A stretch of 25,505 bases of DNA from Leidyana gryllorum EB-2025a (taxonomy: Eukaryota > Protista > Apicomplexa). The first letter of the stretch is position 1. Each line of letters opens with the position of its first letter. This document shows positions 1-25,505 of the stretch, one piece after another. The notes beneath the pieces are model-generated. The model ran no database searches, was not told the origin of the DNA, and was given only the letters and a program-made list of their open reading frames with translations. The translations under genes were made by a program, and so were the position numbers. The DNA is taken from positions 1-25,505 of the forward strand of contig JBLWGC010000142.1 in the NCBI GenBank assembly GCA_048772705.1, written 5' to 3'.

Positions 1-60
1 GCACCCTTCACAGGTCGTAACTCTGTGTCTAAATACCGGCCGGTGCCGTCGGACGAAGTT

Positions 61-133
61 TGGACGACCTGGGCATCGATCCCAGTACCTCTCGCATGCT
101 AAGCGAGCGCTCTAACATTTGAGCTAGTCGCCC
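61..133 (-). tRNA. trnA: tRNA-Ala(AGC), D-loop variant
   Basis: GGGCGAC/GTCGTCC acceptor with G3:U70, CTCGC-TTAGCAT-GCGAG arm; D-loop GG changed to GT. Confidence 0.85.
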
Positions 134-285
134 GTTGTACAGACCGCATCGCATTTCTTGGTTCTCGACATAGTATGACCACTCTCTCGACTGCATCCAA
201 CGGATTGCACCACCATTGCTTCTTGACCCAACCTGCCTGGCAGCATGGTTCCGGGTTCGGGTGATTCCTCGGAGAAAGTCGGAGG

Positions 286-358
286 GGGAGTGTAGCGCAG
301 TTGGTAGCGCGTAGGTCTCATAATCCTGAAGTCGAGAGCTCGATCCTCTCCACTCCCA
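286..358 (+). tRNA. trnM: tRNA-Met(CAT) elongator, T54C variant
   Basis: GGGAGTG/CACTCCC acceptor, CTCATAA loop; T-loop CTCGATC. Confidence 0.85.
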
Positions 359-416
359 CGGTCGGAATCGGAACCGCTGACAAACTCATCATGCTATCAT
401 TCTGAAAGTTGCGAGC

Positions 417-489
417 TACAGCCACCGAGGATCGAACTCGGGACCTTCTGCGTGTGAAGCAGACGTCGTGACCACTAGACCATGGCTGC
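417..489 (-). tRNA. trnV: tRNA-Val(CAC)
   Basis: Full cloverleaf, TCTGC-TTCACAC-GCAGA. Confidence 0.92.
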
Positions 490-552
490 AGCGAAGGTCC
501 CGCAGACCACGAGAAGTGGCCAGGTTTTACGAAGTAGTGAGGACCAGTTCCA

Positions 553-624
553 AGGTCGCGCCGGGAATCGAACCCAGGTCGGGAGATTCAGAGTCTCCAG
601 TGCTAACCACTACACCACGCAACC
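553..624 (-). tRNA. trnQ: tRNA-Gln(CTG)
   Basis: Full cloverleaf, GGAGA-CTCTGAA-TCTCC. Confidence 0.92.
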
Positions 625-797
625 GGTTCAGCCCATCCCAGAAGAGTCTGCTGAATTATCCGTACTAGCGCTTCCTCAACTCGCTCACGCAACACGGGTC
701 TCTCTACAGACCGCTGAAATGTTTTAGGTGGCTCCTGTCTATAGCGCCCAGCGTAGACGTTGGATTTGGGTCGGACAGAAAGCTCACTTCAATCATT

Positions 798-855
798 GCA
801 TGTAGAACGTGTCGTTGCCACCGAGACGACCCAGATTCAATTCCCGGCAGATGCA
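798..855 (+). pseudogene. tRNA-Gly(GCC) pseudogene, D-arm deleted
   Basis: Matches the Gly gene at 10258 with a 5' internal deletion and mismatches. Confidence 0.7.
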
Positions 856-1010
856 GAAGCCACGCCTTATACCGGTGTGGCAAATTGCCAGCGAGTCAGA
901 CATATTACTGACAAGCTCGGTCGGCACGAGCCAGGCGCATTCTGACACTGGATGTAACAATCCCCTCAGATGAATTCGAATATGAGTGACGCGGTGGCAC
1001 GGCGTTGATT

Positions 1011-1084
1011 GCTCCCCTAGCTCAGCTGGTTAGAGCATCGGCCTTATGTGCCGAAGGTCGAGGGTTCGATCCCCCCGGGGAGCA
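1011..1084 (+). tRNA. trnI: tRNA-Ile(TAT), intronless
   Basis: GCTCCCC/GGGGAGC acceptor, TCGGC-CTTATGT-GCCGA. Confidence 0.9.
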
Positions 1085-1149
1085 AATCAATTCAATGACA
1101 GCCGAACGAGACCACCGAGTGCATAGCAGAGTATCCTCCTGCGGACACT

Positions 1150-1221
1150 TGACAGTGCGTCGTGCCGATCGACGGACCTTGCAGTCATAAGCCCAACACT
1201 CTCGCACTGAGTTCCACTACT
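1150..1221 (-). pseudogene. Initiator tRNA-Met pseudogene
   Basis: Decayed copy of 9487-9558. Confidence 0.7.
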
Positions 1222-1318
1222 CCAGCGTCGGATATCATGAAGGAAGCGTAAATGTGGTTCTTGAGATGCGGACTGATTTGACAGCTATGAGTGCCGTCGC
1301 CAGGCAGGCCGACTGGGG

Positions 1319-1361
1319 GGTTGTTTGGTCTGAAGGTATGATTTTTCCTCGTTTGGAAGAA
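1319..1361 (+). pseudogene. tRNA-Pro 5' fragment
   Basis: TGTTTGGTCT..GGTATGATT..GGAAGAA resembles the Pro 5' half. Confidence 0.55.
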
Positions 1362-1409
1362 CATTGCTACTGGGTCGTGTAGCACCGACAGCTGCCGCCC
1401 TACTGAGTT

Positions 1410-1487
1410 TGGACGACCTGGGTATCGATCCCAGTACCTCTCGCATGCAATGCAAAGCGGGCGCTCTACCATCTGAGCTAGCCGCCC
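1410..1487 (-). tRNA. trnA: tRNA-Ala(TGC) with a 5-nt duplication in the anticodon loop (probably non-functional)
   Basis: 78 nt; loop reads TTTGCA-TTGCA-T; one anticodon-stem mismatch. Confidence 0.7.
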
Positions 1488-1547
1488 ATCCGCTGTACAT
1501 GGAAAACCTATTGCATCCAGTGGCTCACCGAGTGCCAATACCACGGC

Positions 1548-1627
1548 GAATAAGAGTGGGATTCGAACCCACGCCCATTCGGACTGCGGCCTTAACACAG
1601 CGCCTTGGACCACTCGGCCATCTTGCC
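1548..1627 (-). pseudogene. tRNA-Leu(AAG), acceptor 3' strand damaged
   Basis: Body as Leu at 24237 with TTAAGGC loop; 3' end TCTTATTC. Confidence 0.75.
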
Positions 1628-1729
1628 GGAGCGCGCTTGGCTCGCCACTTTACACGCTTTCTGTCTGTGAAGTTCTCGAAAAGAAAGCGTTTCCTCGCTT
1701 TAGGTGGAGCTCACTTCACATGTTCGAGC

Positions 1730-1802
1730 TACAGCCACCGAGGATCGAACTCGGGACCTTCTGCGTGTTAAGCAGACGTCGTAACCACTAGACCATGGCT
1801 GC
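1730..1802 (-). tRNA. trnV: tRNA-Val(AAC)
   Basis: Full cloverleaf, TTAACAC loop. Confidence 0.92.
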
Positions 1803-1835
1803 ACGAATGCTTTCCGCAGACCAAGAGAAGTTGCG

Positions 1836-1907
1836 AGGTCGCGCCGGAAATCGAACCCAGGTCGGGAGATTCAAAGTCTCCAGTGCTAACCACTACACCA
1901 CGCAACC
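1836..1907 (-). tRNA. trnQ: tRNA-Gln(TTG), chimeric junction copy, C61T
   Basis: CTTTGAA loop; B-box GTTCGATTT. Confidence 0.8.
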
Positions 1908-2080
1908 GGTTCAGCCCATCCCAGAAGAGTCTGCTGAATTATCCGTACTAGCGCTTCCTCAACTCGCTCACGCAACACGGGTCTCTCTACAGACCGCTGA
2001 AATGTTTTAGGTGGCTCCTGTCTATAGCGCCCAGCGTAGACGTTGGATTTGGGTCGGACAGAAAGCTCACTTCAATCATT

Positions 2081-2138
2081 GCATGTAGAACGTGTCGTTG
2101 CCACCGAGACGACCCAGATTCAATTCCCGGCAGATGCA
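2081..2138 (+). pseudogene. tRNA-Gly(GCC) pseudogene
   Basis: Duplicate of 798-855. Confidence 0.7.
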
Positions 2139-2293
2139 GAAGCCACGCCTTATACCGGTGTGGCAAATTGCCAGCGAGTCAGACATATTACTGACAAGCT
2201 CGGTCGGCACGAGCCAGGCGCATTCTGACACTGGATGTAACAATCCCCTCAGATGAATTCGAATATGAGTGACGCGGTGGCACGGCGTTGATT

Positions 2294-2367
2294 GCTCCCC
2301 TAGCTCAGCTGGTTAGAGCATCGGCCTTATGTGCCGAAGGTCGAGGGTTCGATCCCCCCGGGGAGCA
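2294..2367 (+). tRNA. trnI: tRNA-Ile(TAT)
   Basis: Duplicate of 1011-1084. Confidence 0.9.
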
Positions 2368-2432
2368 AATCAATTCAATGACAGCCGAACGAGACCACCG
2401 AGTGCATAGCAGAGTATCCTCCTGCGGACACT

Positions 2433-2504
2433 TGACAGTGCGTCGTGCCGATCGACGGACCTTGCAGTCATAAGCCCAACACTCTCGCACTGAGTTCCAC
2501 TACT
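2433..2504 (-). pseudogene. Initiator tRNA-Met pseudogene
   Basis: Duplicate of 1150-1221. Confidence 0.7.
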
Positions 2505-2601
2505 CCAGCGTCGGATATCATGAAGGAAGCGTAAATGTGGTTCTTGAGATGCGGACTGATTTGACAGCTATGAGTGCCGTCGCCAGGCAGGCCGACTGGG
2601 G

Positions 2602-2644
2602 GGTTGTTTGGTCTGAAGGTATGATTTTTCCTCGTTTGGAAGAA
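2602..2644 (+). pseudogene. tRNA-Pro 5' fragment
   Basis: Duplicate of 1319-1361. Confidence 0.55.
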
Positions 2645-2692
2645 CATTGCTACTGGGTCGTGTAGCACCGACAGCTGCCGCCCTACTGAGTT

Positions 2693-2770
2693 TGGACGAC
2701 CTGGGTATCGATCCCAGTACCTCTCGCATGCAATGCAAAGCGGGCGCTCTACCATCTGAGCTAGCCGCCC
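2693..2770 (-). tRNA. trnA: tRNA-Ala(TGC) with 5-nt loop duplication
   Basis: Duplicate of 1410-1487. Confidence 0.7.
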
Positions 2771-2830
2771 ATCCGCTGTACATGGAAAACCTATTGCATC
2801 CAGTGGCTCACCGAGTGCCAATACCACGGC

Positions 2831-2910
2831 GAATAAGAGTGGGATTCGAACCCACGCCCATTCGGACTGCGGCCTTAACACAGCGCCTTGGACCACTCGG
2901 CCATCTTGCC
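2831..2910 (-). pseudogene. tRNA-Leu(AAG), damaged acceptor
   Basis: Duplicate of 1548-1627. Confidence 0.75.
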
Positions 2911-3012
2911 GGAGCGCCCTTGGCTCGCCACTTTACACGCTTTCTGTCTGTGAAGTTCTCGAAAAGAAAGCGTTTCCTCGCTTTAGGTGGAGCTCACTTC
3001 ACATGTTCGAGC

Positions 3013-3085
3013 TACAGCCACCGAGGATCGAACTCGGGACCTTCTGCGTGTTAAGCAGACGTCGTAACCACTAGACCATGGCTGC
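3013..3085 (-). tRNA. trnV: tRNA-Val(AAC)
   Basis: Duplicate of 1730-1802. Confidence 0.92.
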
Positions 3086-3118
3086 ACGAATGCTTTCCGC
3101 AGACCAAGAGAAGTTGCG

Positions 3119-3190
3119 AGGTCGCGCCGGAAATCGAACCCAGGTCGGGAGATTCAAAGTCTCCAGTGCTAACCACTACACCACGGAACC
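3119..3190 (-). tRNA. trnQ: tRNA-Gln(TTG) variant
   Basis: CTTTGAA loop; C61T and an acceptor mismatch. Confidence 0.78.
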
Positions 3191-3361
3191 ATTCGCGACC
3201 AAGATTCAAAAGAGTGAATGAAGCCATTGGGACTGGTAATAAATCCGGTCAAGAGCTCGAATGTTTCCGTGCCATTGAGACGACCCGCGCTCGATACGAG
3301 GCGGCTTCAAATCTGGGTAAGTGCACGAGGAGTTTCTCGGCGGTTCGAACTCGACGGAGCG

Positions 3362-3434
3362 TGGGAGTGGAGAGGATCGAACTCTCGACTTCAGGATTAT
3401 GAGACCTACGCGCTACCGACTGCGCTACACTCCC
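3362..3434 (-). tRNA. trnM: tRNA-Met(CAT) elongator
   Basis: Identical to 15901-15973. Confidence 0.93.
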
Positions 3435-3542
3435 CCTCCGACTTTCTCCGAGGAAATTACCCGAATCCAGAAGCATGCTGACAGGCATGCTCCTGTTGGA
3501 TCCCATCCCAAGTGACCTTGACTACCTTTATAGCCTCACCTT

Positions 3543-3614
3543 GTCCGAGTCGTCTAGCGGTTAGGACAGCATGTTGTGGCCGTGCAAACCCAGGCTCGAT
3601 TCCTGGCTCGGACA
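3543..3614 (+). tRNA. trnH: tRNA-His(GTG)
   Basis: GTCCGAG/CTCGGAC acceptor, TTGTGGC loop, A73, G-1 not encoded; C at position 54. Confidence 0.85.
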
Positions 3615-3689
3615 AGCAGTCTAAAGTGCATTGCTGTTCGCCCCGGTTGAAAATATTGTTGCAGCCATGGTCAAGTCTGTAAGATCGGC

Positions 3690-3760
3690 TGCACCTGCCG
3701 GGACTCGAACGCGGGCTGCGAGCATGGGAAGCTCGCATCCTACCCTTGGACCACAAGTGC
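3690..3760 (-). tRNA. trnG: tRNA-Gly(CCC)
   Basis: CGAGC-TTCCCAT-GCTCG; one T-stem mismatch. Confidence 0.85.
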
Positions 3761-3929
3761 ACTCGAGAAAGAGCTTCAGCACCCCGAGACTCGGCCGCAG
3801 TCTGCGTTGAGCTAGTGGGTGCCTCAGGTACTGGCAGGTTCCAGTCTGCGACGCTGAACTACGAGGCTCGGCTAAGATGATTGGAGCTTGAGAGACTTAA
3901 GCTTTGCAGGTGCCCAGTCGATGCAGTCA

Positions 3930-4001
3930 AGCCTTCTGCCGGAATCGAACCGGCGACCTTGCGCTTACTGAGCGAATGCTCTGCCCCTAAGCTAGCAAGG
4001 C
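3930..4001 (-). pseudogene. tRNA-Thr(AGT), degenerate
   Basis: Copy of 9608 with U33C and stem mismatches. Confidence 0.75.
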
Positions 4002-4089
4002 AATGCAAGCCGAAGATCACGAATCAGACACTATCGACGGAGATTGCTGGGCACTTTGCTCAAGTATTCCACTGACTTCAACCACTGAC

Positions 4090-4160
4090 TTCCACTGCCG
4101 GACTTGAGCCCGGAGCTTGCGGGTGAGGCCGCATATCCTAGCCACTCAGACTACAGTCGG
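4090..4160 (-). pseudogene. tRNA-Glu pseudogene
   Basis: Glu body with deletions in the T-arm and anticodon arm. Confidence 0.7.
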
Positions 4161-4220
4161 CAACATTCCTCAGCGAAGCTAGTCAGCCAAATCATCGAAG
4201 TAAAGTGCTGAGCATTTGGC

Positions 4221-4293
4221 TACCTACGGCGAGACTCGAACTCGCAACCTTTGGATTAGAAGTCCAACGCGCTATCCATTGCGCCACGTAGGC
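4221..4293 (-). tRNA. trnR: tRNA-Arg(TCT), intronless
   Basis: Full cloverleaf, TTGGA-CTTCTAA-TCCAA. Confidence 0.93.
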
Positions 4294-4375
4294 CGAGGCT
4301 CTTCGACAAGATTGAAATAACAACATTCACATTTTTGGACCACACCCTGAAATAGGTCTTCCATGTTGTACGCAT

Positions 4376-4448
4376 GGGCGGTTTGATCAGATGGTGGAGC
4401 GCTCGCATCGCATGCGAGAGGCACTGGGATCGACAGCCAGGTCGTCCA
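4376..4448 (+). pseudogene. tRNA-Ala(CGC), degenerate
   Basis: Ala body, ATCGCAT loop, damaged A and B boxes. Confidence 0.72.
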
Positions 4449-4525
4449 AACTCCATGCAACTTTGGCTGCAGAGAAACGGCTGGAGTGTTTCATCCAGTG
4501 GCTGACCGAGTGCCGATACCATGGC

Positions 4526-4608
4526 TGACAAGACTGGGATTCGAAGCCACGGGGCCCGTTCAAACTGCGACCTGCACACAGGGCCTTCGAGCACTCGGCC
4601 ATCTTGCT
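4526..4608 (-). pseudogene. tRNA-Leu pseudogene
   Basis: Decayed copy of the Leu(CAG) body. Confidence 0.68.
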
Positions 4609-4694
4609 TGTTGGCTCGCCCTTCCACGCGTTTCCTGTACTTGGAATCTCAAAATGGAAGAACTTCTGGGGTTGGGGGCGGCGTATCCAGAGCG

Positions 4695-4765
4695 TCCGGG
4701 ATAGTATAGCGGTTAGGATTTCCGCCTATCACGCGGAAGACCAGGGTCGATTCCCGGTCTCGGGG
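4695..4765 (+). pseudogene. tRNA-Asp pseudogene (ATC anticodon)
   Basis: Asp body, CTATCAC loop, T-loop deletion. Confidence 0.72.
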
Positions 4766-4820
4766 GACAGTTTGTTGCGCTTAGGATTGTTTCCTTTGGA
4801 TCTCGCTGAAAGTTGCGAGC

Positions 4821-4893
4821 TACAGCCACCGAGGATCGAACTCGGGACCTTCTGCGTGTTAAGCAGACGTCGTAACGACTAGACCATGGCTGT
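4821..4893 (-). tRNA. trnV: tRNA-Val(AAC) variant
   Basis: Val body; G1A and a D-loop change. Confidence 0.8.
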
Positions 4894-5078
4894 ACGGAGC
4901 TTCGTGAAAGTGACGTATGTCTTTCGAATCACGTGTCCGATGAGCCTGGTTCTATGAACCGGTCTGTATCCTCACAGAATTCGGACGGCCTGTAGTAGCT
5001 CATTTAGAGAACATCTAACGCTCCTGTTACATTTCATCCTGATTGATGCCCCATTGCCTTGAAAGCTACTTGCAGATT

Positions 5079-5150
5079 TTCCGAGTCGTCTAGTGGTTGG
5101 AACAGCCAGTTGTGGCCGTGCGAAGCCAGTCTCGATTCCCTGCTCGGCCA
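5079..5150 (+). pseudogene. tRNA-His(GTG) pseudogene
   Basis: Decayed copy of 3543. Confidence 0.7.
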
Positions 5151-5222
5151 ATATGTCTTCGGTGTCTCTAATGGAACTCTCTCTTGATGGTTATACACTT
5201 TCATTCGACGGCTCCGTTGATT

Positions 5223-5295
5223 GGCGCTATGGCCTAATGGATATGGCATCGGTCTACGGAACCGGGGATTCTGGGTTCGAGTCCCAGTAGCGTCT
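5223..5295 (+). tRNA. trnR: tRNA-Arg(ACG)
   Basis: GGCGCTA/TAGCGTC acceptor, CTACGGA loop. Confidence 0.9.
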
Positions 5296-5440
5296 GGGCG
5301 ACTGGTCGGGTTCCAGCCCCTCACGATTGCTCCACGATTGCTGCAACTCAGTTTTTGTCTCAGCTGGCTTCCTTGTTGTGGATACAGCATCCCCGTGCAC
5401 CCTTTTGACAGGAGGAGATGCATCGAGAGAAGTTCCACTA

Positions 5441-5513
5441 GGGAGTGTATTGCAGCCGGTAGCGCGTAGGTCTCATAATCCTGAAGTCGAGAGTTCGATC
5501 CTCTCCACTCCCA
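5441..5513 (+). tRNA. trnM: tRNA-Met(CAT), D-stem mutated
   Basis: Met body with TATTGCAGCC in the A-box region. Confidence 0.75.
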
Positions 5514-5557
5514 CGGTCGGAATCGAAACCGCCGACCAACTCATCATGCTATCATTT

Positions 5558-5628
5558 TGCATCTGTCGGGAATCGCACACGGGTTATCTCGATGGCAGCG
5601 AGCGACTCTTCCACTGGACCACAGATGC
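5558..5628 (-). pseudogene. tRNA-Gly(GCC) pseudogene
   Basis: Decayed Gly; T-loop lost. Confidence 0.7.
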
Positions 5629-5694
5629 AGAACACGATCTTGTGAATTTTGTACGTGGTGACAGCCATTCCTTATAAGCCTATCGATGCATCAA

Positions 5695-5766
5695 AGCCTT
5701 CTGCCTGAATCGAACCGGCGACTTCTCGCTTACGAAGCGAACGCTCTGCCCCTTAGCTAAGAAGGC
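5695..5766 (-). tRNA. trnT: tRNA-Thr(CGT) variant
   Basis: TTCGTAA loop; two changes vs 15462. Confidence 0.82.
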
Positions 5767-5871
5767 AACTTAGCTGGAGAATCATGTGTCAGTTGTATCG
5801 ACAAAAGTTAGCCGGGCGCCCGTGGCCGGGCATGCTGGGATGAAGTCGCAGGTTATCCTGACTACAACGGC

Positions 5872-5951
5872 TGACAAGAGTGGGATTCGAACCCACGCCC
5901 TTTCGGACTGCGGCCTGAACACAGCGCCTCAGACCACTCGGCCATCTTGCC
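5872..5951 (-). tRNA. trnL: tRNA-Leu(CAG)
   Basis: 80 nt with long variable arm, TTCAGGC loop. Confidence 0.9.
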
Positions 5952-6045
5952 GGAATGTTGTTGGCTCGCCGCTCAACGCGTTTTCTGTTCTTGGATTCTG
6001 GATATGGAAAGACTTTTAGAGTTGGATGCCGGCGTGTTCAGAGCG

Positions 6046-6116
6046 TCCGAGATAGTATAGCGGTTAGGATTCCGTCTGTCACGCGGAAGACCCGGGTTCG
6101 ATTCCCGGTCTCGGAG
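6046..6116 (+). tRNA. trnD: tRNA-Asp(GTC) variant with 1-nt deletion
   Basis: TCCGAGA/TCTCGGA acceptor, CTGTCAC loop. Confidence 0.78.
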
Positions 6117-6171
6117 CACAGTTGATTTCGCTTAAGATTCTTCCCTTTGGTTCCCGCTGAAAGTTGCGAGC

Positions 6172-6244
6172 TACAGCGAGCGAGGATCGAACTCGGGACC
6201 CTCTGCGTGTGAAGCAGACGTCATGACCACTGAACCATGGCTGC
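6172..6244 (-). pseudogene. tRNA-Val(CAC), degenerate
   Basis: Acceptor and D-arm mismatches. Confidence 0.72.
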
Positions 6245-6307
6245 AGCGAAGGGCCCGCAGACCAAGAGAAGTGGCGAGGTTTTACGAAGTAGTGAGGACT
6301 AGTGTTG

Positions 6308-6379
6308 AGGTCGCGCCGGGAATCGAACCCAGGTCGGGAGATTCAGAGTCTCCAGTGCTAACCACTACACCACGCAACC
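6308..6379 (-). tRNA. trnQ: tRNA-Gln(CTG)
   Basis: Identical to 553-624. Confidence 0.92.
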
Positions 6380-6492
6380 CATTCAGTCCTTCCCAAAAAG
6401 GAGTTGGTAGAGCCATCGGACTAGCGCTGTAGGTCATCAGGTTACGTGTTTCCAGAGACACACGCCTTTTTTCCCAGCCCGACAAGCTCCGT

Positions 6493-6564
6493 GCAGTCAT
6501 GGTCAGTGATCACGACGTCTGCTTCACACGCAGAAGTTCCCGAGTTTGATCCTCGGTGGCTGTA
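6493..6564 (+). pseudogene. tRNA-Val(CAC), degenerate
   Basis: T-loop TTTGATC and D-arm deletion. Confidence 0.72.
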
Positions 6565-6619
6565 GCTCGCAACTTTCAGCGAGGACCAAAGGAAACAATC
6601 CTAAGCGCAACCAAGTGTG

Positions 6620-6680
6620 CTCCGAGACCGGGAAGCGACCCTGGTCTTCTGCGTGATAGGCGGAAATACTAACCGCTATA
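6620..6680 (-). pseudogene. tRNA-Asp (ATC), 5'-truncated pseudogene
   Basis: Shares lesions with 4695-4765. Confidence 0.68.
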
Positions 6681-6773
6681 GAGACCGCGGGTTCGGGCAG
6701 CGCGACCGGTCCGAGTCAAGCTTGCTGAACCGTATGTGAAGCCACTGTCTGCGGGATGCCGAGCTTGACCGTT

Positions 6774-6855
6774 GGCAACTTGCCCTAGTGGTTAAGGGCG
6801 TAGACTTGAAATCTACTGGGCCTGGCCCGCGCTGGTTCAAATCCAGCAGTTGTCG
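6774..6855 (+). tRNA. trnS: tRNA-Ser(TGA)
   Basis: 82 nt, long variable arm GGGC-CTG-GCCC, CTTGAAA loop, G73. Confidence 0.88.
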
Positions 6856-6919
6856 TGCGATGTGATCGGAGGGTCAAACACCAACTCACGCATAAAACTC
6901 AACCATGTGCTATCTCCTC

Positions 6920-6990
6920 TGCATCTGCCCGGAATCGAACCCGGGTCGTCTCGATGGCAACGAGACATTTTGTCACTTGACCACAGATGC
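6920..6990 (-). tRNA. trnG: tRNA-Gly(GCC), D-loop and T-stem mutated
   Basis: Gly body with several substitutions. Confidence 0.7.
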
Positions 6991-7086
6991 GTAACACCTT
7001 GTTGTTGAAGCTCGTACACAATAACGGCCGTTTTGCTTCGAATGAGAAGACAGGGTCAAGTTGAGCGAGTATGAGAGACGCCTAGT

Positions 7087-7680: not shown

Positions 7681-7753
7681 AGACGCTACTGGGACTCGAG
7701 CCCACAATCCTCAGTTCCGTGGACCGACGCCACATCCATTCGGCCATACCGGG
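7681..7753 (-). pseudogene. tRNA-Arg(ACG) pseudogene
   Basis: Decayed copy of 5223. Confidence 0.7.
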
Positions 7754-7830
7754 GGCGTCAAATGAGAGTGTGTTGCGATCAAGCGTTGTCGATCCGGCAA
7801 GAGTTCCCATCCGAGACTTCAGAGACATAC

Positions 7831-7902
7831 TGTCCGAGCCAGGGATCGGGCCTGGGTATGCACGGCCACAACTTGCTCTTGTAAGCACTAGACGACCCGG
7901 AC
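7831..7902 (-). pseudogene. tRNA-His(GTG) pseudogene
   Basis: Decayed copy of 3543. Confidence 0.7.
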
Positions 7903-7978
7903 AATCTTCAAGTGAGGCTGGTGGGTACCAAAGCCACTTTAGATGTCAGGCTGTCGGGTTTTGTGTCCTTACTTTCCT

Positions 7979-8051
7979 GCCGCCCTAGCTCAGTCGGTAG
8001 AGCGCAAGACTCTTAATCTTGCAGTCGCGGGTTCGAGCCCCGCGGGCGGTG
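7979..8051 (+). tRNA. trnK: tRNA-Lys(CTT)
   Basis: Full cloverleaf, CAAGA-CTCTTAA-TCTTG. Confidence 0.94.
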
Positions 8052-8111
8052 CGGATCTATATCCCTGGAAATAAGAATGGAACTGTTGCCTGCAAGCACA
8101 CTCAGCTGGAT

Positions 8112-8184
8112 TTCCACTGCCGGGACTTGAACCCGGATCGTGCGGGTGAGAGCCGCATATCCTAGCCACTTAGACTACAGTGGA
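8112..8184 (-). tRNA. trnE: tRNA-Glu(CTC)
   Basis: TCCACTG/CAGTGGA acceptor, CTCTCAC loop. Confidence 0.93.
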
Positions 8185-11500: not shown

Positions 11501-11503
11501 GTT

Positions 11504-16843: not shown

Positions 16844-16901
16844 GCTGTCGAACTTGGCATTTTGCGGCCAGTGGCTTCACATACGGTTCGAGCTTTACTA
16901 G

Positions 16902-16974
16902 GACTGCTCGCGCTGCCCAAACCCGCGGATCTCCCTTCAAAAGTCTTGCGCTCTACTGACGGAGTTGGGGCGGC
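16902..16974 (-). pseudogene. tRNA-Lys(TTT)-derived element
   Basis: Same family as 12463. Confidence 0.65.
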
Positions 16975-17144
16975 AAGGAAGCTCGCCCCGTACCCGAGGA
17001 AGGCCCAAGATTCCACGATCAATACAAATGGAATTGGTTACTAAGTCCGAATCTGTATCAGAGATCCACTCACTTGATCACGCCGACATACCATGTTTTC
17101 CAAGACGGTACGGCTCTCGGCCGAAGCCCCAACTCAACCACTCG

Positions 17145-17217
17145 TCCACTGTAGTCTAAGTGGCTATGATTTGCGGCTCTTACCCGCACGATTCGGGTTC
17201 AAGTCCCGGCAGTGGAA
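17145..17217 (+). tRNA. tRNA-Glu body with CTT (Lys) anticodon, likely pseudogene
   Basis: TGCGG-CTCTTAC-CCGCA. Confidence 0.7.
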
Positions 17218-17293
17218 GTCATTGAAGTACTCGAGCAAAGTGCTCCACTAATCTCCGTCAGTAGCCATCGTTTCGTTATCTCCGGCTTCCATT

Positions 17294-17365
17294 GCCTTCT
17301 TAGCTTAGGGGCATAGCGTTCGCTTCGTAAGCGAGAAGTCGCCGGTTCGATTCCGGCTGAAGGCT
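17294..17365 (+). tRNA. trnT: tRNA-Thr(CGT) variant
   Basis: Two mismatches vs 15462. Confidence 0.8.
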
Positions 17366-17495
17366 CGACTGCATCGACTGGGCACCGGCAAGCTGCTCGC
17401 AAACTCCAATAATCGTAGCTCAGCCATCAGAGGTAAGTCTCTCAGCCACGAAGTCGCAGGTTTGGAACCTGCCAGTACCTGAGGCACCCACAGGG

Positions 17496-17556
17496 GGCTG
17501 TTTGGTCTAGTTATATGATTCTTTCTTCGGCTGGAAGAAGTCCTGGGTTCAATGCC
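17496..17556 (+). pseudogene. tRNA-Pro, 3'-truncated pseudogene
   Basis: Pro body ends in the T-arm. Confidence 0.65.
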
Positions 17557-17668
17557 ACGTCTCTCCAAGGTCGGCTACTATACGCGGCTCCCACTCGTAC
17601 AATCCCGAATGAAGTCCAGACCAGCTGAGACAAAATCTGAGTTGCACCAGTTGTGAGGGCTGGAACTG

Positions 17669-17740
17669 CTCCGAGACCGGGAATCGAACCCGGGTCTTCC
17701 GCGTGACAGGCGGAAATACTAACCACTATACTATCTCGGA
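17669..17740 (-). tRNA. trnD: tRNA-Asp(GTC)
   Basis: Full cloverleaf, G73. Confidence 0.94.
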
Positions 17741-17902
17741 CGCTAGTAAACACGCCGGCTTCCAACCCCAGAACTCCTCGCATTTTGAGATTTCACCGAT
17801 AGGAAACGGGTAACACTTCGGCAAGATGGCCGAGTGGTGTGTGCAAGCCGCCGTCCGAAAATGCGGGCGGATGATCGCAACCATGTTTAGGCTAATGACT
17901 GA

Positions 17903-19553: not shown

Positions 19554-19626
19554 AGACGCTACTGGGACTCGAACCCAGAATCCCCGGTTCCGTAGACCGA
19601 TGCCATATCCATTAGGCCCTAGCGCC
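19554..19626 (-). tRNA. trnR: tRNA-Arg(ACG), U8G variant
   Basis: One change vs 5223. Confidence 0.84.
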
Positions 19627-19747
19627 GACTAGCGGAGCCGTCAAATGGAAGTGTGTAGCGATCAAGACAGGACATGGGCAGCGACGCCCGATGGTGGGTC
19701 TGGACAGACTTCACCCACATCTCCCATTCAAAACATCGGGGACATAC

Positions 19748-19794
19748 TATCCAAGCCAGGATTCGGGCTTGGGCATGCACGGCCACAACTTGCT
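19748..19794 (-). pseudogene. tRNA-His 3' fragment
   Basis: Paralog of 7831 with the 5' half deleted. Confidence 0.6.
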
Positions 19795-19855
19795 GAGGCT
19801 GGTGGCAAAGCCACTTTAGTTGTCAGGCTATCGGGTTTTGTGTCGTTGCTTTCTT

Positions 19856-19928
19856 GCCGCCCTAGCTCAGTCGGTAGAGCGCAAGACTCTTAATCTTGCA
19901 GTCGCGGGCTCGAGCCCCGCGCGCGGTG
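19856..19928 (+). tRNA. trnK: tRNA-Lys(CTT) variant
   Basis: T54C and one acceptor mismatch. Confidence 0.8.
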
Positions 19929-19962
19929 TGGATCTGTTGCCTGCAAGCACACTCAGCTGGAT

Positions 19963-20035
19963 TTCCACTGCCGGGACTTGAACCCGGATCGTGCGGGTGA
20001 GAGCCGCATATCCTAGCCACTTAGGCTACAGTGGA
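19963..20035 (-). tRNA. trnE: tRNA-Glu(CTC)
   Basis: One D-stem change. Confidence 0.86.
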
Positions 20036-20921: not shown

Positions 20922-21051
20922 CAGCGACAATGTTTCAGAGGTCAGTATAGAGACCCTCCGCTCTCTACCGCAGGATTCTGCAACCCCTTTGTTGTAGATT
21001 CACCAGTCAGGAGGGTACGGCTCTCGGCGAAAGCTGCAGCTGAGGGAGTTG

Positions 21052-21124
21052 TCCACTGTAGTCTAAGTGGCTAGGATATGCGGCTCTCACCCGCACGATC
21101 CGGGTTCAAGTCCCGGCAGTGGAA
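21052..21124 (+). tRNA. trnE: tRNA-Glu(CTC)
   Basis: Full cloverleaf. Confidence 0.93.
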
Positions 21125-21184
21125 ATCCAGCTGAGTGTGCTTGTAGGCAACGGTTCCATTCCTACTCCCAGAGACATTGATTTG

Positions 21185-21257
21185 CACCGCCCGCGGGGCT
21201 CGAACCCGCGACTGCAAGATTAAAAGTCTTGCGCTCTACCGACTGAGCTAGGGCGGC
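21185..21257 (-). tRNA. trnK: tRNA-Lys(TTT)
   Basis: Identical to 12160. Confidence 0.93.
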
Positions 21258-21385
21258 AAGGAAGCTCTAAACTTAGTTACACCCTATTTGCCGTTGGGTG
21301 GAGCAGTGGAAGGATTGACTGGTGGAACAATGTGCTCCAGTAACTTCCGTCAATAGTGACTGATGCGTGATTACCAGCTGATATT

Positions 21386-21457
21386 GCCTTCTTAGCTTAG
21401 GGGCACAGCATTCGCTTAGTAAGCGAAAGGTCGCCGGTTCGATTCCGGCAGAAGGCT
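21386..21457 (+). tRNA. trnT: tRNA-Thr(AGT)
   Basis: One D-stem change. Confidence 0.87.
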
Positions 21458-21506
21458 TTGCTCACGAGAAAATCTATTCTATAACTGTTTCCCTTCTGCG
21501 CACACT

Positions 21507-21578
21507 TAGCAGTGCGTCATTTCGATCGACGGACCTTTGGGTTATGAGCCCAACACTCTTCCACTGAGCTACAATGCT
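21507..21578 (-). tRNA. trnM: Initiator tRNA-Met(CAT) variant
   Basis: C61T and an acceptor mismatch vs 9487. Confidence 0.78.
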
Positions 21579-21716
21579 CAGTCTGCAACATGGAAGAGGT
21601 AGCCGAAATGCGATTCTTGAGATGCTAGTTACCCTGACTGCCCTACCCAAGTGGGCTAACGAGGTGGTTGTGTTGTTTCTGAGAACTTGTCCCGTCGGGT
21701 CAACCGACGACCAAGA

Positions 21717-21787
21717 GGGCTGTTCTGGCAATCGAACCAGGACTACTTCCAAGCTGAGGAAGGATCATACCACTAGACCAAACAGCC
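21717..21787 (-). pseudogene. tRNA-Pro pseudogene
   Basis: Anticodon loop and T-arm decayed. Confidence 0.68.
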
Positions 21788-21877
21788 GACTGGTCGGTGG
21801 TTCAACCCGCTGGGTACAGTCGAGAGACTCGTATCACTATGTGAAGTACCACTCAATGCCATGAGGTAGTCATAGAG

Positions 21878-21948
21878 AGAGGCTAGCCCAGATGATGAAA
21901 CGGTGGCTTAGTATACAAAAGGTTCTGGGATCGATTCCCAGCCCATCC
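21878..21948 (+). pseudogene. tRNA-Ala remnant
   Basis: Same family as 9120. Confidence 0.5.
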
Positions 21949-22043
21949 GAACTACATAGATGGAACCCTCGCGGGAGTAGTCTAGTTGGCCTATCAACGC
22001 TGTCCATCAGGTTGAGTAGTAGTTTGCCGATGACCGCTCTACT

Positions 22044-22123
22044 TCCGGTGGGACGGAATCGAACCGCCGACTATCTGATGCCAGCACTACAGTCAGATGC
22101 TCTACCAACCGAGCTACCCCCGG
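22044..22123 (-). tRNA. trnY: tRNA-Tyr(GTA) with a 7-nt intron (22080-22086)
   Basis: C1:G72, A73, TCTGA-CTGTAG[TGCTGGC]A-TCAGA; G5:A68 mismatch. Confidence 0.85.
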
Positions 22124-23078: not shown

Positions 23079-23197
23079 GCCTCCGACGACAGATGGCACC
23101 TATTCACTTACTTGATGCCTCTGCGTCGCCACTGCAATCTCTAGCATGTACTGCTGGTGTTTTGAGCCCAGCCGCCTACTCCGATGATCGCAGCACA

Positions 23198-23279
23198 CGA
23201 CAACTGCTGGATTTGAACCAGCGCGGGCCAGGCCCAGTAGATTTCTAGTCTACCCCCTCAACCACTCGGGCAAGTTGCT
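23198..23279 (-). tRNA. trnS: tRNA-Ser(AGA) variant
   Basis: G1A and one D-loop change. Confidence 0.83.
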
Positions 23280-23340
23280 GCTGTCGAACTTGGCATTTTG
23301 CGGCCAGTGGCTTCACATACGATTCAGCGAGCTTTACTAG

Positions 23341-23413
23341 GACTGCTCGCGCCGCCCGAACCCGCGGTTCTCCCTTCAAAAGTCTTGCGCTCTACTGACG
23401 GAGTTGGGGCGGC
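23341..23413 (-). pseudogene. tRNA-Lys(TTT)-derived element
   Basis: Same family as 12463. Confidence 0.65.
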
Positions 23414-23549
23414 AAGGAAGCTCGCCCCGTACCCGAGGAAGGCCCCAGATTCCACGATCAATACAAATGGAATTGGTTATGATCACGCCGACATACCATG
23501 TTTTCCAAGACGGTACGGCTCTCGGCCGAAGCCCCAACTCAACCACTCG

Positions 23550-23622
23550 TCCACTGTAGTCTAAGTGGCTAGGATATGCGGCTTTCACCCGCACGATTCG
23601 GGTTCAAGTCCCGGCAGTGGAA
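23550..23622 (+). tRNA. trnE: tRNA-Glu(TTC)
   Basis: Full cloverleaf. Confidence 0.9.
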
Positions 23623-23698
23623 GTCATTGAACTACCCTAGCAAAGTGCTCCACTAATCTCCGTCAATAGCGATTGTTTCGTCATCTCCGGCTTCCATT

Positions 23699-23770
23699 GC
23701 CTTCTTAGTTTAGGGGCAGAGCGTTCGCTTCGTAAGCGAGAAGTCGCCGGTTCGATTCCGGCTGAAGGCT
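23699..23770 (+). tRNA. trnT: tRNA-Thr(CGT) variant
   Basis: Two changes vs 15462. Confidence 0.8.
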
Positions 23771-23900
23771 CGACTGCATCGACTGGGCACCGGCAAGCTG
23801 CTCGCAATTTCCAATAGTCCTAGCTCAGCCATCAGAGGTAAGTCTCTCAGCCACGAAGTCGCAGGTTTGGAACCTGCCAGTACTTGAGGCACCCATAGGG

Positions 23901-23961
23901 GGCTGTTTGGTCTAGTTATATGATTCTTTCTTCGGCTGGAAGAAGTCCTGGGTTCAATGCC
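23901..23961 (+). pseudogene. tRNA-Pro, 3'-truncated pseudogene
   Basis: Duplicate of 17496. Confidence 0.65.
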
Positions 23962-24073
23962 ACGTCTCTCCAAGGTCGGCTACTATACGCCACTCCCACT
24001 CGTACAATCCCGAATGAAGTCCAGACCAGCTGAGACAAAATCTGAGTTGCATCAGTTGTGAGGGCTGGAACTG

Positions 24074-24144
24074 CTCCGAGACCGGGAATCGAACGCGGTC
24101 CTCCGCGTGACAGGCGGAGACACTAACCACTATACTGACTCGGA
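24074..24144 (-). pseudogene. tRNA-Asp(GTC), degenerate
   Basis: T-stem deletion and substitutions. Confidence 0.7.
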
Positions 24145-24236
24145 CGCTCCGAACACGCCGGCCTCCAATCCCAGAAGTCTTTCTATTTCGGCTCACGGAC
24201 AAAAAAACGCGTGGAGCGACGAACCAACAAGACTGC

Positions 24237-24316
24237 GGCAAGATGGCCGAGTGGTCTAAGGCGCTGTGTTCAGGCCGCAGTCCGAGAGGGCGTGGGTTCG
24301 AATCCCACTCTTGTCA
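24237..24316 (+). tRNA. trnL: tRNA-Leu(CAG)
   Basis: Full 80-nt cloverleaf. Confidence 0.94.
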
Positions 24317-24386
24317 GCCGTTGTATTGTATTGGTAGGTAGTCCCCTCTCTTCACTGATAGACAGGTCGTTCGAGCTACATACGGC

Positions 24387-24457
24387 TGCACCTGCCGGGA
24401 CTCGAACCCGGGTTACGACCTTGGAAGGGTCGCATCTTACCCTTAGACCACAAGTGC
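24387..24457 (-). tRNA. trnG: tRNA-Gly(TCC)
   Basis: CGACC-CTTCCAA-GGTCG. Confidence 0.93.
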
Positions 24458-24607
24458 GATTGCGAAAGAGTTGCAGCACCCCGAGACACTCGGGCGATTT
24501 CTGCGCGCCACCGTCCGCCATACACCCAAAATTGTCCACCGACTTCAAACTCATTGGCATGTGGTCAGGGATGGATTTCCAACATCTTCAACCTTCAGGT
24601 CATCTTC

Positions 24608-24679
24608 AGGGCACGCGCGGAGTTGAACCACGGACTTGCTGATCTGCAGTCAGCTGCTCTACCACTGAGCTACGTACCC
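24608..24679 (-). tRNA. trnC: tRNA-Cys(GCA)
   Basis: GCTGA-CTGCAGA-TCAGC, U73. Confidence 0.92.
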
Positions 24680-24774
24680 ACAAACTACCCGTCATACTCG
24701 CTCAACTCGATTCTGTCTTCTCTTCTAAGCAAAACGGCCGGTATTGTGCACGAGCTTAAACAACAACGGGTTGT

Positions 24775-24845
24775 GCATCTGTGGTCTTGTGGTAGAATGT
24801 GTCGTTGCCAGCGAGACGACCCAGGTTCGATTCCCGACAGACGCA
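24775..24845 (+). pseudogene. tRNA-Gly(GCC), degenerate
   Basis: Multiple stem mismatches. Confidence 0.7.
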
Positions 24846-24989
24846 GGAGACACGCCTCAAACCGCCGTGGCAAATTAGCAGAGACGCTGACAAGCTTGGT
24901 CGGCACGAGGCCGGGGCATTCTGACACTTGATGTAACAACCCCCTGAGATAGAATCGAATGTGAGTTACGCGGTGGAACGGCGGTGATC

Positions 24990-25062
24990 GCTCCCTAGCT
25001 CAGCTGGTTAGAGCATCGGCCTTATGTGCCGAAGGTCGAGGGTTCGATCCCCCCGGGGAGCA
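24990..25062 (+). tRNA. trnI: tRNA-Ile(TAT), 1-nt acceptor deletion
   Basis: As 1011 with one C fewer. Confidence 0.8.
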
Positions 25063-25270
25063 AATCAACCCAATGACAGCCGAACGCGACCGCCGAGTAC
25101 TCCAGCATTTGACACCTGTATGATTTTTCCTCGCTTAAAAGAACATTGCAACTGGGTCTTGTAGCTCAGTCGGCAGAGTCTACCCCCTAACCACTCGGGC
25201 AAGTTGCCACCTGTCCAACTGGGCATCTTGCGCCCAGTGCCGTCACATACGGTTCAGCAAGCTCGACTCG

Positions 25271-25342
25271 GACTTCTCGCGCTGCCCGAACCTGCGGTCT
25301 CCCATCAAAAGTCTTGCGCTCTATCGACGCAATTGGGGCGGC
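25271..25342 (-). pseudogene. tRNA-Lys-derived element
   Basis: Same family as 12463. Confidence 0.58.
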
Positions 25343-25442
25343 GACGAAGCTCGGACTTAGTAACAAATTCCATTCGTATTGATCGTTGAATCTCGGGCCT
25401 TCCTCTGGCACAGGGCGAAGCTGTATCAGAGATGCACTCACT

Positions 25443-25505
25443 TGGTCACGCACGGGCTCTAATCGCGGACTCAGAACTCATTAGGCTCACGCTCTGGCCG
25501 CCTGA
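25443..25505 (-). pseudogene. tRNA-Ile(AAT), degenerate, cut by the window end
   Basis: TTAGGCTCACGCTCT shared with 23013-23078. Confidence 0.6.

Follow-up and report, generated by a model that had tools for sequence, protein, structure and literature searches.

The window analyzed here, a 25,505-nt stretch of the Leidyana gryllorum EB-2025a assembly, is filled with tRNA genes and their remnants, which raises the questions of how such a locus is built and rearranged and whether it supplies the cell with tRNAs. In a single-gene tree of HSP70 with 17 rows, the host branches together with Gregarina and Protomagalhaensia (support 100/99), which places it among the gregarines, a lineage of invertebrate gut parasites related to the malaria parasite.

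A mosaic of intact and decayed tRNA genes

A first-pass annotation described about 150 tRNA-derived units on both strands, covering 19 amino acids and initiator tRNAMet (iMet), with intact and decayed copies interleaved, no protein genes, and the array reaching both window edges. A BLAST search against modal copies bore out this description: 166–167 units were identified (87 on the minus strand and 79 on the plus strand), the outermost at positions 61 and 25505, which together occupy 45% of the bases; the well-preserved copies cover the same 19 amino acids and iMet, and the listed open reading frames, as judged from the list itself, overlie tRNA units on either strand, with none of them regarded as a gene. 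The same search of three shuffled windows detected no units, and ARAGORN and Rfam called 103 and 107 tRNA genes in the window, respectively. Forty units (24%) are identical to the modal copy, and beside them stand units in graded decay, with 40 at 95 to <100% identity, 28 at 88–95%, 25 that are full-length but below 88%, and 31 that are partial; tRNA-Phe is present only as a 22-nt relic at 9105. The genes show canonical type 2 features, including internal A and B boxes and a cloverleaf structure (Rfam scores up to 73.6 bits), and the 7-bp acceptor stem closes in the modal copies of 39 of the 43 tRNA types. No short tandem repeats were found in the window, its Rfam search returned tRNA only, and the viral contigs compared gave no match. 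The sequencing runs compared with the stretch have only 5–6% of words in common with it, and there is no RNA run among them.

Table 1. Features of the window (coordinates in nt)
Feature	Position	Strand	Remarks
Mosaic tRNA array	1–25505		166 tRNA-derived units, ~6.5 per kb; whole of contig C142
Tandem duplication	625–3190		1283-bp unit, 625–1907 / 1908–3190; 2 sites differ; tRNA-Gln genes at borders
Chimeric tRNA-Gln	1836–1907	-	Crossover interval 1875–1902, from diagnostic sites
Leu-Asp-Val-Gln module	5872–6379		Second full copy 13101–13609; Gln-less versions at 4526, 22165
Arg-His-Lys-Glu module	7681–8184		Second copy 19554–20035
Ala-Pro-iMet-Thr module	9124–9679		More copies 11505–12032, 13887–14428, inverted 21386–21948
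Lys(relic)-Ser-Gly module	9988–10328		Second copy 12463–12824
Solo LTR, 600 bp	10901–11500	+ (nominal)	TG...CA ends; 7-bp terminal inverted repeat; TATA-like box at 11380
Part of LTR	11366–11473	+	79% identical to C73 rDNA spacer between 18S and 5S genes
Two tandem Ala-Pro-Met-Gly(relic)-Thr modules	14903–16225		91% identical
Repeated block	16750–17776		Repeat at 23186–24179, 92% over 1030 columns
Inverted paralog of 11500–12406	21011–21953		85%; Tyr-flank/Ala junction at edge ~21948 corresponds to the LTR site without the LTR
tRNA-Tyr(GTA), 80 nt	22044–22123	-	7 extra nt following position 37, where introns canonically lie; ARAGORN/BLAST calls and sequence reading

The recurring modules listed by the first-pass annotation were recovered as claimed by the unit census for Ala-Pro-iMet-Thr (four copies), Arg-His-Lys-Glu (two) and Ala-Pro-Met-Gly(relic)-Thr (two), and in part for the others: two of the four Leu-Asp-Val-Gln copies are complete, the sites at 6683 (given as partial) and 22713 assigned to Lys(relic)-Ser-Gly contain Ser-Gly alone, and the copy of the Ile-iMet(relic)-Pro(relic)-Ala set at 18235 has an Asn relic ahead of Ala. 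These modules are joined in many ways, with 199 adjacency types between neighboring units, and the recurrence of unit-order words falls to 2% at a length of 24 units.

Two points were missed by the earlier description. Its main finding does not mention the loss of RNA polymerase III (Pol III) terminators, the most unusual property of the array, and the segment at 10901–11500 is not tRNA-derived; it is a solo LTR flanked by a 5-bp target-site duplication (10896–10900 and 11501–11505) that overlaps the 3′-end of a tRNA-Ala gene. At least 40 copies at 96–100% identity occur in the assembly, many of them on array contigs; the three copies examined have three different 5-bp target-site duplications, and same-strand pairs lie 6.7 kb apart in C72 and C181, according to match positions alone. 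Rfam found nothing credible in this island, and its interpretation as a structured RNA or a Pol I promoter for polycistronic transcripts was dropped on account of the LTR ends and target-site duplications.

Rearrangement through tRNA genes and isoacceptor homogenization

The first-pass annotation inferred a birth-and-death locus that rearranges by using its tRNA genes as homology. Direct tests supported both the turnover and the tRNA-mediated rearrangement, but the locus belongs to a compartment that extends over many contigs of the genome and is not one special site. Of the 47 ends of young blocks (at least 1 kb and at least 94% identical), 26 fall in both copies where a tRNA begins or ends, compared with 12% per copy under the null expectation and 15% with simulated random breakpoints; the remaining ~45% lie in spacers or cut tRNAs, and LTR insertions bring in further structure. 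Beyond the tRNA edge, the sequence is non-homologous in all 26 cases and the next unit is different in 25, and when the ends are collapsed to distinct junction classes, 15 of 31 remain at tRNA edges (p = 9e-7). Block ends show no preference between 5′- and 3′-edges (14:12), and a 3′-biased origin of the junctions, such as integration or retroposition at tRNA 3′-ends, was rejected on this ground.

Exchange within genes is also visible in their flanks. The common flanks of each tRNA body fall into one to three families on the 5′-side and one to five on the 3′-side, and Asn, Val, Thr and Gly-GCC each show all four flank combinations. In the chimeric tRNA-Gln gene (Table 1), the anticodon and 3′-half resemble the gene at 3119–3190, whereas the 5′-end and 5′-flank resemble the gene at 553–624. 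Half of the paralogous blocks are inverted, their identity ranges from 75 to 99% and rises with length, and substitutions in them outnumber indel events by about eightfold or more. The presence of pseudogenes of graded age beside young duplicates conforms to birth-and-death evolution, and the crossovers within repeated genes conform to ectopic recombination. SINEs typically consist of a tRNA head, an unrelated body and an A-rich or simple tail, have their own target-site duplications and lack donor flanks; tRNA-derived SINEs were ruled out, since the copies here share both 5′- and 3′-flanks and travel in multi-gene blocks.

The isoacceptor bodies of Ala, Glu, Gln, Lys, Pro, Ser-NGA, Val and Leu-NAG are only 1–4 nt apart, in comparison with mostly 6–28 nt in L031, a tRNA gene cluster of a related organism. 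Well-preserved shared bodies carry a synonymous anticodon in 345 of 364 cases, and the G34 form never occurs in A34 boxes; an anticodon for the wrong amino acid is present on ~5% of well-preserved bodies, which would impose a cost if all copies were expressed. In young blocks, tRNA units and spacers change at similar rates (0.0143 vs 0.0155 per site, p = 0.41), and neither a transcription-type strand asymmetry (C>T vs G>A) nor, when CpG- or RIP-like mutation was sought, any context bias was detected; the equal rates and the lack of asymmetry thus give no sign of selection or transcription acting on single copies. In older blocks, tRNA units change more slowly than spacers (0.047 vs 0.065), a difference that gene conversion or alignment bias can also produce.

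A genome-wide compartment without adjacent terminators

The assembly comprises 15.5 Mb, for which a first look gave 11,591 tRNA candidates, and the arrays are estimated to occupy ~1.7–2.4 Mb, a figure obtained by scaling 403 exact Thr 24-mers by sample density and possibly inflated by redundant contigs. By this estimate, the arrays contain the majority of tRNA genes and account for roughly one tenth of the genome, and working and broken tRNA copies together number on the order of ten thousand. No TTAGGG-type telomere repeat was found in the assembly. The role as a structural chromatin domain that the first-pass annotation also raised, as a TFIIIC/condensin hub or pericentromeric barrier, is a conjecture.

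Termination at an adjacent oligo-dT run is regarded as near-universal for eukaryotic tRNA genes. In the arrays, a T4 run is found within 10 nt of 1.1% of 276 perfect copies (background, 1.4%), within 25 nt of 6% and within 45 nt of 17% of genes, and the median distance to the next distant T-run is ~350 nt, or about two units; non-canonical T-tracts are not enriched as alternative terminators. A genome-wide B-box pattern search yielded 37 T4 hits against an estimated 6,000 matches, nearly all of them array variants of Pro, Asn and Tyr, together with a solitary Cys and a solitary Gly gene. No terminator-bearing copy was found by this search for Leu, Thr, Arg, Asp, Ser, Lys, Glu, Gln or Ile; the pattern does not see 13 of the 43 types (among Ala, Val, Met, iMet, His, Phe, Trp, Ser-GCT and Arg-TCT), divergent T-loops, or trailers longer than ~3–5 nt. 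A hidden canonical tRNA set, suggested by the T5-terminated Gly gene on C230, received no support from genome-wide pattern searches. In the same genome, U6 ends in T6 and 5S in T4, and genes for RPC5 and a La-domain protein are present.

We favor, with a probability of about 0.6, the reading that the window is part of a ~2-Mb gregarine tRNA compartment that is scrambled and terminator-less and serves as the main source of tRNA via read-through. The arrays would have originated from a small ancestral gene set with its flanks, amplified by kilobase segmental duplications and scrambled mainly by non-allelic homologous recombination inside tRNA genes of the same body, direct copies giving duplications and deletions and opposed copies giving inversions, with small deletions and LTR-retrotransposon insertions as additional shapers. 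The breaks are assumed for this genome to arise from replication-fork stalling at dense Pol III genes, a break source established in yeast. Pol III would start at the internal A and B boxes and continue to a distant T-run or a convergent neighbor, and the tRNAs would be excised from the read-through RNA by RNase P and RNase Z; because of this excision the terminators may have been free to decay, whereas U6 and 5S would have kept theirs because termination makes their 3′-ends. Selection would be exerted on the pool as a whole, not on individual copies. A more far-reaching version, which we advance tentatively and at somewhat less than even odds, holds that essentially the entire working tRNA complement has lost its adjacent oligo-dT terminators and is transcribed, as overlapping read-through RNAs, from both strands of a self-reshuffling megabase array, in which isoacceptors are re-derived by wobble-base change on shared bodies and which possibly forms centromeric or terminal structural domains.

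The arrays could instead be a tRNA-derived satellite, mostly silent and neutral centromeric or subtelomeric heterochromatin, in which case the tRNAs would come from a small set of active genes, located in the arrays or elsewhere. The neutral divergence of young duplicates without transcription-type strand bias is consistent with this, as are the ~80% of units that differ from the modal copy, the abundance of LTR copies, the position of arrays at the ends of the gene-bearing contigs C43 and C2, and two solitary T5-bearing genes on large contigs. Nevertheless, we consider it unlikely: rDNA, 5S and U6 are located inside arrays, the anticodon spectrum follows decoding rules, and the pattern search found no terminator-bearing copies for nine isotypes, so that even an active subset would be terminator-less. 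The satellite reading does not conflict with the recombination mechanism of the favored one; the two differ in the transcribed fraction.

Termination might also occur independently of T-runs right behind each tRNA gene, through collision with a convergent gene or a neighbor bound by TFIIIC, a protein roadblock, or a torpedo-like mechanism that releases Pol III once RNase Z has cut. A convergent neighbor is indeed faced by 304 of 512 (59%) well-preserved genes, and the strand switches between 55% of neighbors, as compared with 19% in L031; yet this orientation is near the random-inversion expectation, the consensuses of the downstream flanks contain no common motif, and U6 and 5S retain T-run termination, which makes such a mechanism quite improbable. 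An artefact, in which order and copy number would stem from misassembly, from chimeric reads or from the assembly of many parasite genotypes into contigs of their own, appears very improbable. Contigs are often short, C73 holds fold-back rDNA, LTR copies at similar offsets near the starts of C137, C138, C139 and C153 and an identical partial-plus-full LTR pair in C123 and C138 hint at redundancy, and the near-identical 1283-bp tandem is possibly an assembler loop. Against this, the blocks diverge to 75–99% identity, mainly by substitution, while rDNA copies are identical except for one gap; identical junctions recur in different contigs; LTR target-site duplications differ; and single contigs carry 77–90 kb of array. 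No window stretch of at least 300 bp has a match of at least 99% in the other sampled contigs, a weak test of redundancy because the sample covers only some tenth of the arrays. While an artefact could raise the total number of copies, it could not generate the mosaic.

A genome in which thousands of tRNA genes, but not U6 and 5S, have lost their terminators allows a test of whether RNase Z processing can by itself stand in for termination, and of the price paid in Pol III recycling and in La binding. In addition, the arrays provide many natural instances of ectopic recombination via tRNA genes, a process known until now mainly from yeast fragile sites, and offer a route for isoacceptor homogenization and anticodon switching.

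Comparison with known tRNA gene arrays

Among apicomplexans, reported tRNA counts are 45 in P. falciparum and C. parvum, 14 in Porospora and 231 in Gregarina niphandrodes, which resembles the host in size (13.9 Mb), GC content (53.8%) and its already raised count (PMC9250747, Table 1); the present arrays extend this range from tens to about ten thousand. A literature search found no array like these in apicomplexans, and short-read assemblies of other gregarines may have collapsed such a large compartment. The metagenome contig L031 (Ga0114129_10037694) contains 43 tRNA genes in 6.8 kb, a nearly full decoding set, and shares with the arrays Thr (71/72), Gly (69/71) and Leu (77/80) sequences and a short Tyr intron. 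Unlike the arrays, all its genes are intact, with distinct isoacceptor bodies, long co-oriented runs and a T4 run within 25 nt of all 43 genes; it is a plausible picture of the ancestral state, although its taxonomy is not established.

Adjacent T-runs lie within 15 bp of >97% of yeast tRNA genes and within 7 nt of all trypanosomatid ones (PMC2695483). Human read-through pre-tRNAs with long trailers show that some genes can do without an adjacent T4. Remote or non-canonical terminators concern 12–20% of human genes (PMC3141230), and the corresponding share here is ~85–95%, with non-canonical T-tracts not enriched. The tDNA clusters of zebrafish, Xenopus and Nematostella, which contain thousands of genes and pseudogenes (PMC2888827), likewise show heterogeneous neighbors and rapid turnover; however, nearly all pairs are parallel in Xenopus and Danio, whose genomes are far larger, whereas 55% of neighbors are antiparallel here and the arrays exceed a tenth of the assembly.

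In Entamoeba, almost all tRNA genes (500–7000) reside in arrays that make up >10% of the genome and consist of 25 distinct units of up to five genes, which follow one another head to tail without variation within an isolate, with STRs in the spacers of E. histolytica and E. dispar (PMC2652664). That protist parasite also has 5S in some units, retrotransposons near arrays and proposed tRNA-linked recombination, but the present arrays have no repeating head-to-tail unit and no STRs, their isotypes are mixed on both strands, and most copies are decayed. Phytophthora infestans has ~11,000 tRNA genes in a 219-Mb genome, arranged as tandem repeats of one to three genes that have diverged little, expanded by unequal crossing-over and with a suggested role in nuclear organization (PMC9584435); a similar number is contained here in 15.5 Mb, scrambled and decaying, with 20 isotypes interleaved in 25 kb in place of a one-family repeat. 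The arrays are a variant of the kind of tRNA array known from Entamoeba and Phytophthora.

tRNA content of the window and extent of the arrays

A total of 103 tRNA genes were predicted in the window by ARAGORN and 107 by Rfam, whose scan returned no family besides tRNA. A BLAST census against modal copies (the commonest sequence of each tRNA type, derived from 220 kb of array) identified 166–167 tRNA-derived units, intact or decayed, and none in shuffled sequence searched in the same way. Forty units match the modal copy exactly, 40 show 95% to less than 100% identity, 53 are full length yet more decayed and 31 are fragments. The well-preserved copies represent 19 amino acids and initiator Met, and Phe is present only as a 22-nt relic; the array of about 150 units with this coverage described in the first-pass annotation is thus borne out. 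The recurring modules listed there are also present, except that Gln is absent at 4526 and 22165 and that an Asn relic lies inside the module at 18235. A paralog within the window exists for 91% of its length, and no short tandem repeats were found in it. One tRNA-Tyr has an unusually short insert of 7 nt at the intron position; the Tyr gene of L031 (Ga0114129_10037694), a related metagenome tRNA cluster used for comparison, is 82 nt long.

The window constitutes all of contig C142 in an assembly of 15.5 Mb and 237 contigs. For HSP70 encoded in this assembly, the best single-domain matches (77%) come from Gregarina niphandrodes and Protomagalhaensia wolfi, and the protein groups with both in a tree of 17 rows (support 100/99), which identifies the source organism, on this protein, as a gregarine. 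The HSP70 family is expanded (40 matches) and includes divergent members clustered in tandem on contigs C104, C230 and C2. A rough first look with a tRNA model gave 11,591 candidates genome-wide, equivalent to ~1.75 Mb of array, and one Thr 24-mer has 403 exact matches in the assembly, which scales to ~2.3 Mb at its sample rate of 33 in 192 kb. On these two estimates the arrays occupy ~11–15% of the assembly, with roughly 11,000–15,000 units and 2,400–3,200 modal copies, all extrapolated values that redundant contigs may inflate. The sequence read amounts to about a tenth of the arrays, and unit density is ~6.6 per kb in every sampled stretch, on five contigs besides C142. The gene-bearing contig C43 (553 kb) begins with array, with matches up to ~62 kb and one more at 135 kb, and the start of gene-bearing C2 is likewise array; a TTAGGG-type telomere repeat was not found in the assembly, and hence offers no marker for placing the arrays. 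On the present results, the chromatin-hub role suggested in the first-pass annotation is neither favoured nor disfavoured. According to published counts, G. niphandrodes has 231 tRNAs, P. falciparum and C. parvum have 45 each, and Porospora has 14 (PMC9250747).

Block amplification and crossovers in tRNA genes

The arrays arose by amplification in blocks of kilobase size, with crossing-over in tRNA genes, and they show homogenised bodies and neutral copy decay. The common 5′ flank families number one to three per tRNA body and the 3′ flank families one to five; for nearly every tRNA family the multi-member flank families hold 95–100% of copies. Of 1,264 neighbour pairs, 75% belong to fifty adjacency types (199 types observed vs. 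676 in shuffles); among unit words, 94% recur at a length of two units and 2% at a length of 24. These patterns indicate that the arrays derive from a small ancestral set that was amplified and then cut up. Paralogous blocks over 3 kb are young (96–99% identity), those of 200–400 bp are old (median 82%), and half of the blocks are inverted.

Among the ends of young blocks (at least 1 kb and at least 94% identity), 26 of 47 lie at a tRNA's outer edge in each copy, as compared with 12% for random positions and 15% for simulated random-breakpoint duplications; when shared junctions are collapsed, the count is 15 of 31 (p = 9 × 10⁻⁷), and shorter blocks give 27 of 105 (p = 1 × 10⁻⁴). The 5′ and 3′ edges are used equally, and beyond them lie unrelated sequence (26/26) and a different next unit (25/26). 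Asn, Val, Thr and Gly-GCC each show all four pairings of two 5′ flanks with two 3′ flanks, which requires crossovers at the tRNA gene. The joint of a tandem duplication of 1283 bp with two differences is a chimeric tRNA-Gln, a single case that an assembler loop could mimic. Block ends, flank reassortment and this crossover together support the earlier proposal that rearrangement uses the tRNA genes as homology. The remaining young-block ends are situated in spacers or cut tRNAs short, a pattern that deletions and older junctions would produce. The isoacceptor bodies of Ala, Glu, Gln, Lys, Pro, Ser-NGA, Val and Leu-NAG are 1–4 nt apart, and those of L031 mostly 6–28 nt; such closeness points to homogenisation, via conversion or repeated switching of the wobble base.

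The LTR in the window has a 5-bp target-site duplication, and two other copies have different ones, all three sites being in a tRNA-dense region, where three insertions would not by themselves demonstrate targeting of tRNA genes. At least 40 copies (96–100% identity) are found in the assembly, many on known array contigs, and two same-strand pairs, 6.7 kb apart, may be full retrotransposon elements. Part of the LTR shows 79% identity to the stretch of rDNA spacer that separates 18S from 5S. A complete rDNA unit, 5S included, is embedded in tRNA array, and a second, inverted and truncated copy on C73 could reflect either a chimeric read or a genuine inversion. A motif of 13–14 nt occurs three times per rDNA unit, flanking 5S and the 3′ end of 28S, as well as in the LTR; it is a possible protein-binding site, e.g., a Pol I terminator or fork barrier.

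Coordinates of features in the window and in other array or comparison sequences
Sequence	Position	Feature	Remark
Window	625–1907 / 1908–3190	Tandem duplication	
Window	1875–1902	Crossover interval in chimeric tRNA-Gln	
Window	10901–11500	Solo LTR	Only long non-tRNA stretch; TG start, CA end, 7-bp terminal inverted repeat
Window	11366–11473	LTR part similar to rDNA spacer	
Window	11455–11468	13–14 nt motif	
Window	13400, 16615, 17145, 18235, 18913, 21717	Anticodon point mutants	Body of another tRNA
Window	22044–22123	tRNA-Tyr	
L011, with L012 (C157) and L013 (C73)	L011: 4912–10000	Full rDNA unit	
L011	4860, 5051, 5284	13–14 nt motif	
L013	5571, 5762, 5973	13–14 nt motif	
C73	near 2830	Fold-back of second rDNA copy	
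C72	20631–27928	LTR pair	
C181	28187–35485	LTR pair	
C61 (L022)	~12,500–12,620	U6 snRNA gene	Minus strand
C230	1499803	Solitary tRNA-Gly(GCC)	T5
C104	807105	Solitary tRNA-Cys	T5
C230	1088307	Possible solitary tRNA	
C43	351581	Possible solitary tRNA	
L031	~5380–5690 (of 1–6824)	Imperfect tandem repeat	Spacer repeat twice around it

Copy decay, anticodons and loss of terminators at tRNA genes

In 13 young blocks, tRNA-derived sites and spacers have diverged alike (0.0143 vs. 0.0155 differences per site, p = 0.41), and the decay of single copies is therefore almost neutral; the values for 32 older blocks are 0.047 vs. 0.065. No CpG bias and no C>T vs. G>A strand bias were seen in the compared blocks. 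Since the acceptor stems of the modal copies are closed and the anticodon is synonymous in 345 of 364 well-preserved shared bodies, the tRNA pool still looks functional; no G34 form in A34 boxes occurs among these 364. Approximately 5% of well-preserved bodies carry an anticodon for the wrong amino acid, and several ARAGORN names in the window correspond to anticodon point mutants, which, if expressed, are candidates for mistranslation. Genuine Leu-TAG or Arg-CCG genes are absent from the 220 kb of sampled array (the window and L011–L030), in which Pro-TGG, Val-TAC and Arg-CCT are rare (1–3 copies); thus, decoding of some codons may depend on few genes or on wobble.

Terminators have been lost at the tRNA genes but not at U6 or 5S. 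Of 276 perfect copies, 1.1% have a T4 in the next 10 nt and 6% in the next 25 nt, as compared with 1.4% and 4.5% of random positions; T4 is reached at a median of 350 nt, approximately two units downstream, and degenerate T-tracts are not enriched behind array tRNA genes. Genome-wide, a B-box with T4 near the end of the gene, a pattern covering 30 of 43 tRNA types and short trailers only, was matched 37 times among an estimated 6,000 B-box matches. Pro, Asn and Tyr are represented among these by array variants; the others are a solitary Cys with a slightly divergent 3′ end and a solitary Gly, each on a large gene-bearing contig and seen as a matched 3′ end only. No match was found for Leu, Thr, Arg, Asp, Ser, Lys, Glu, Gln or Ile. 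Two other sites, likewise matched 3′ ends only, may be further solitary tRNAs, e.g., Sec. A terminator lies within 15 bp of over 97% of yeast genes and is remote for 12–20% of human genes (PMC3141230), and in trypanosomatids it is within 7 nt for all tRNA genes (PMC2695483).

Source of tRNA and comparison with known arrays

With a rough joint probability of 0.6, the arrays would be the source of most tRNA: Pol III would read through successive units, RNase P and RNase Z would release the tRNA products, redundancy would relax selection on each copy, and modal copies would stay common through recombination and selection on the pool. The chief competing view, a tRNA-derived satellite that is mostly silent and has a small active subset, is distinctly less probable. 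Termination independent of T-tracts is improbable. Termination as such seems intact, given that U6, inside an array contig, ends in T6, that 5S ends in T4, and that RPC5 and two La-domain genes are found in the assembly. Slightly more improbable still is an artefact as the source of the arrays, which could inflate the counts but could not produce the mosaic, because paralogs differ mainly by substitutions, whereas rDNA copies are identical save for one gap.

A literature search, with most subscription papers outside its scope, yielded no account of arrays of this kind from gregarines; large heterogeneous tRNA gene clusters are known in animals (PMC2888827). L031, a 6.8-kb contig with 43 intact tRNA genes, closely resembles the gregarine arrays in sequence but differs in having T4 within 25 nt in 43/43 genes. 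The tRNA arrays of Entamoeba (PMC2652664) and Phytophthora (PMC9584435) are alike in scale, although the uniform repeat unit of both is absent here; the gregarine arrays are a variant of this type of array that lacks such a unit.
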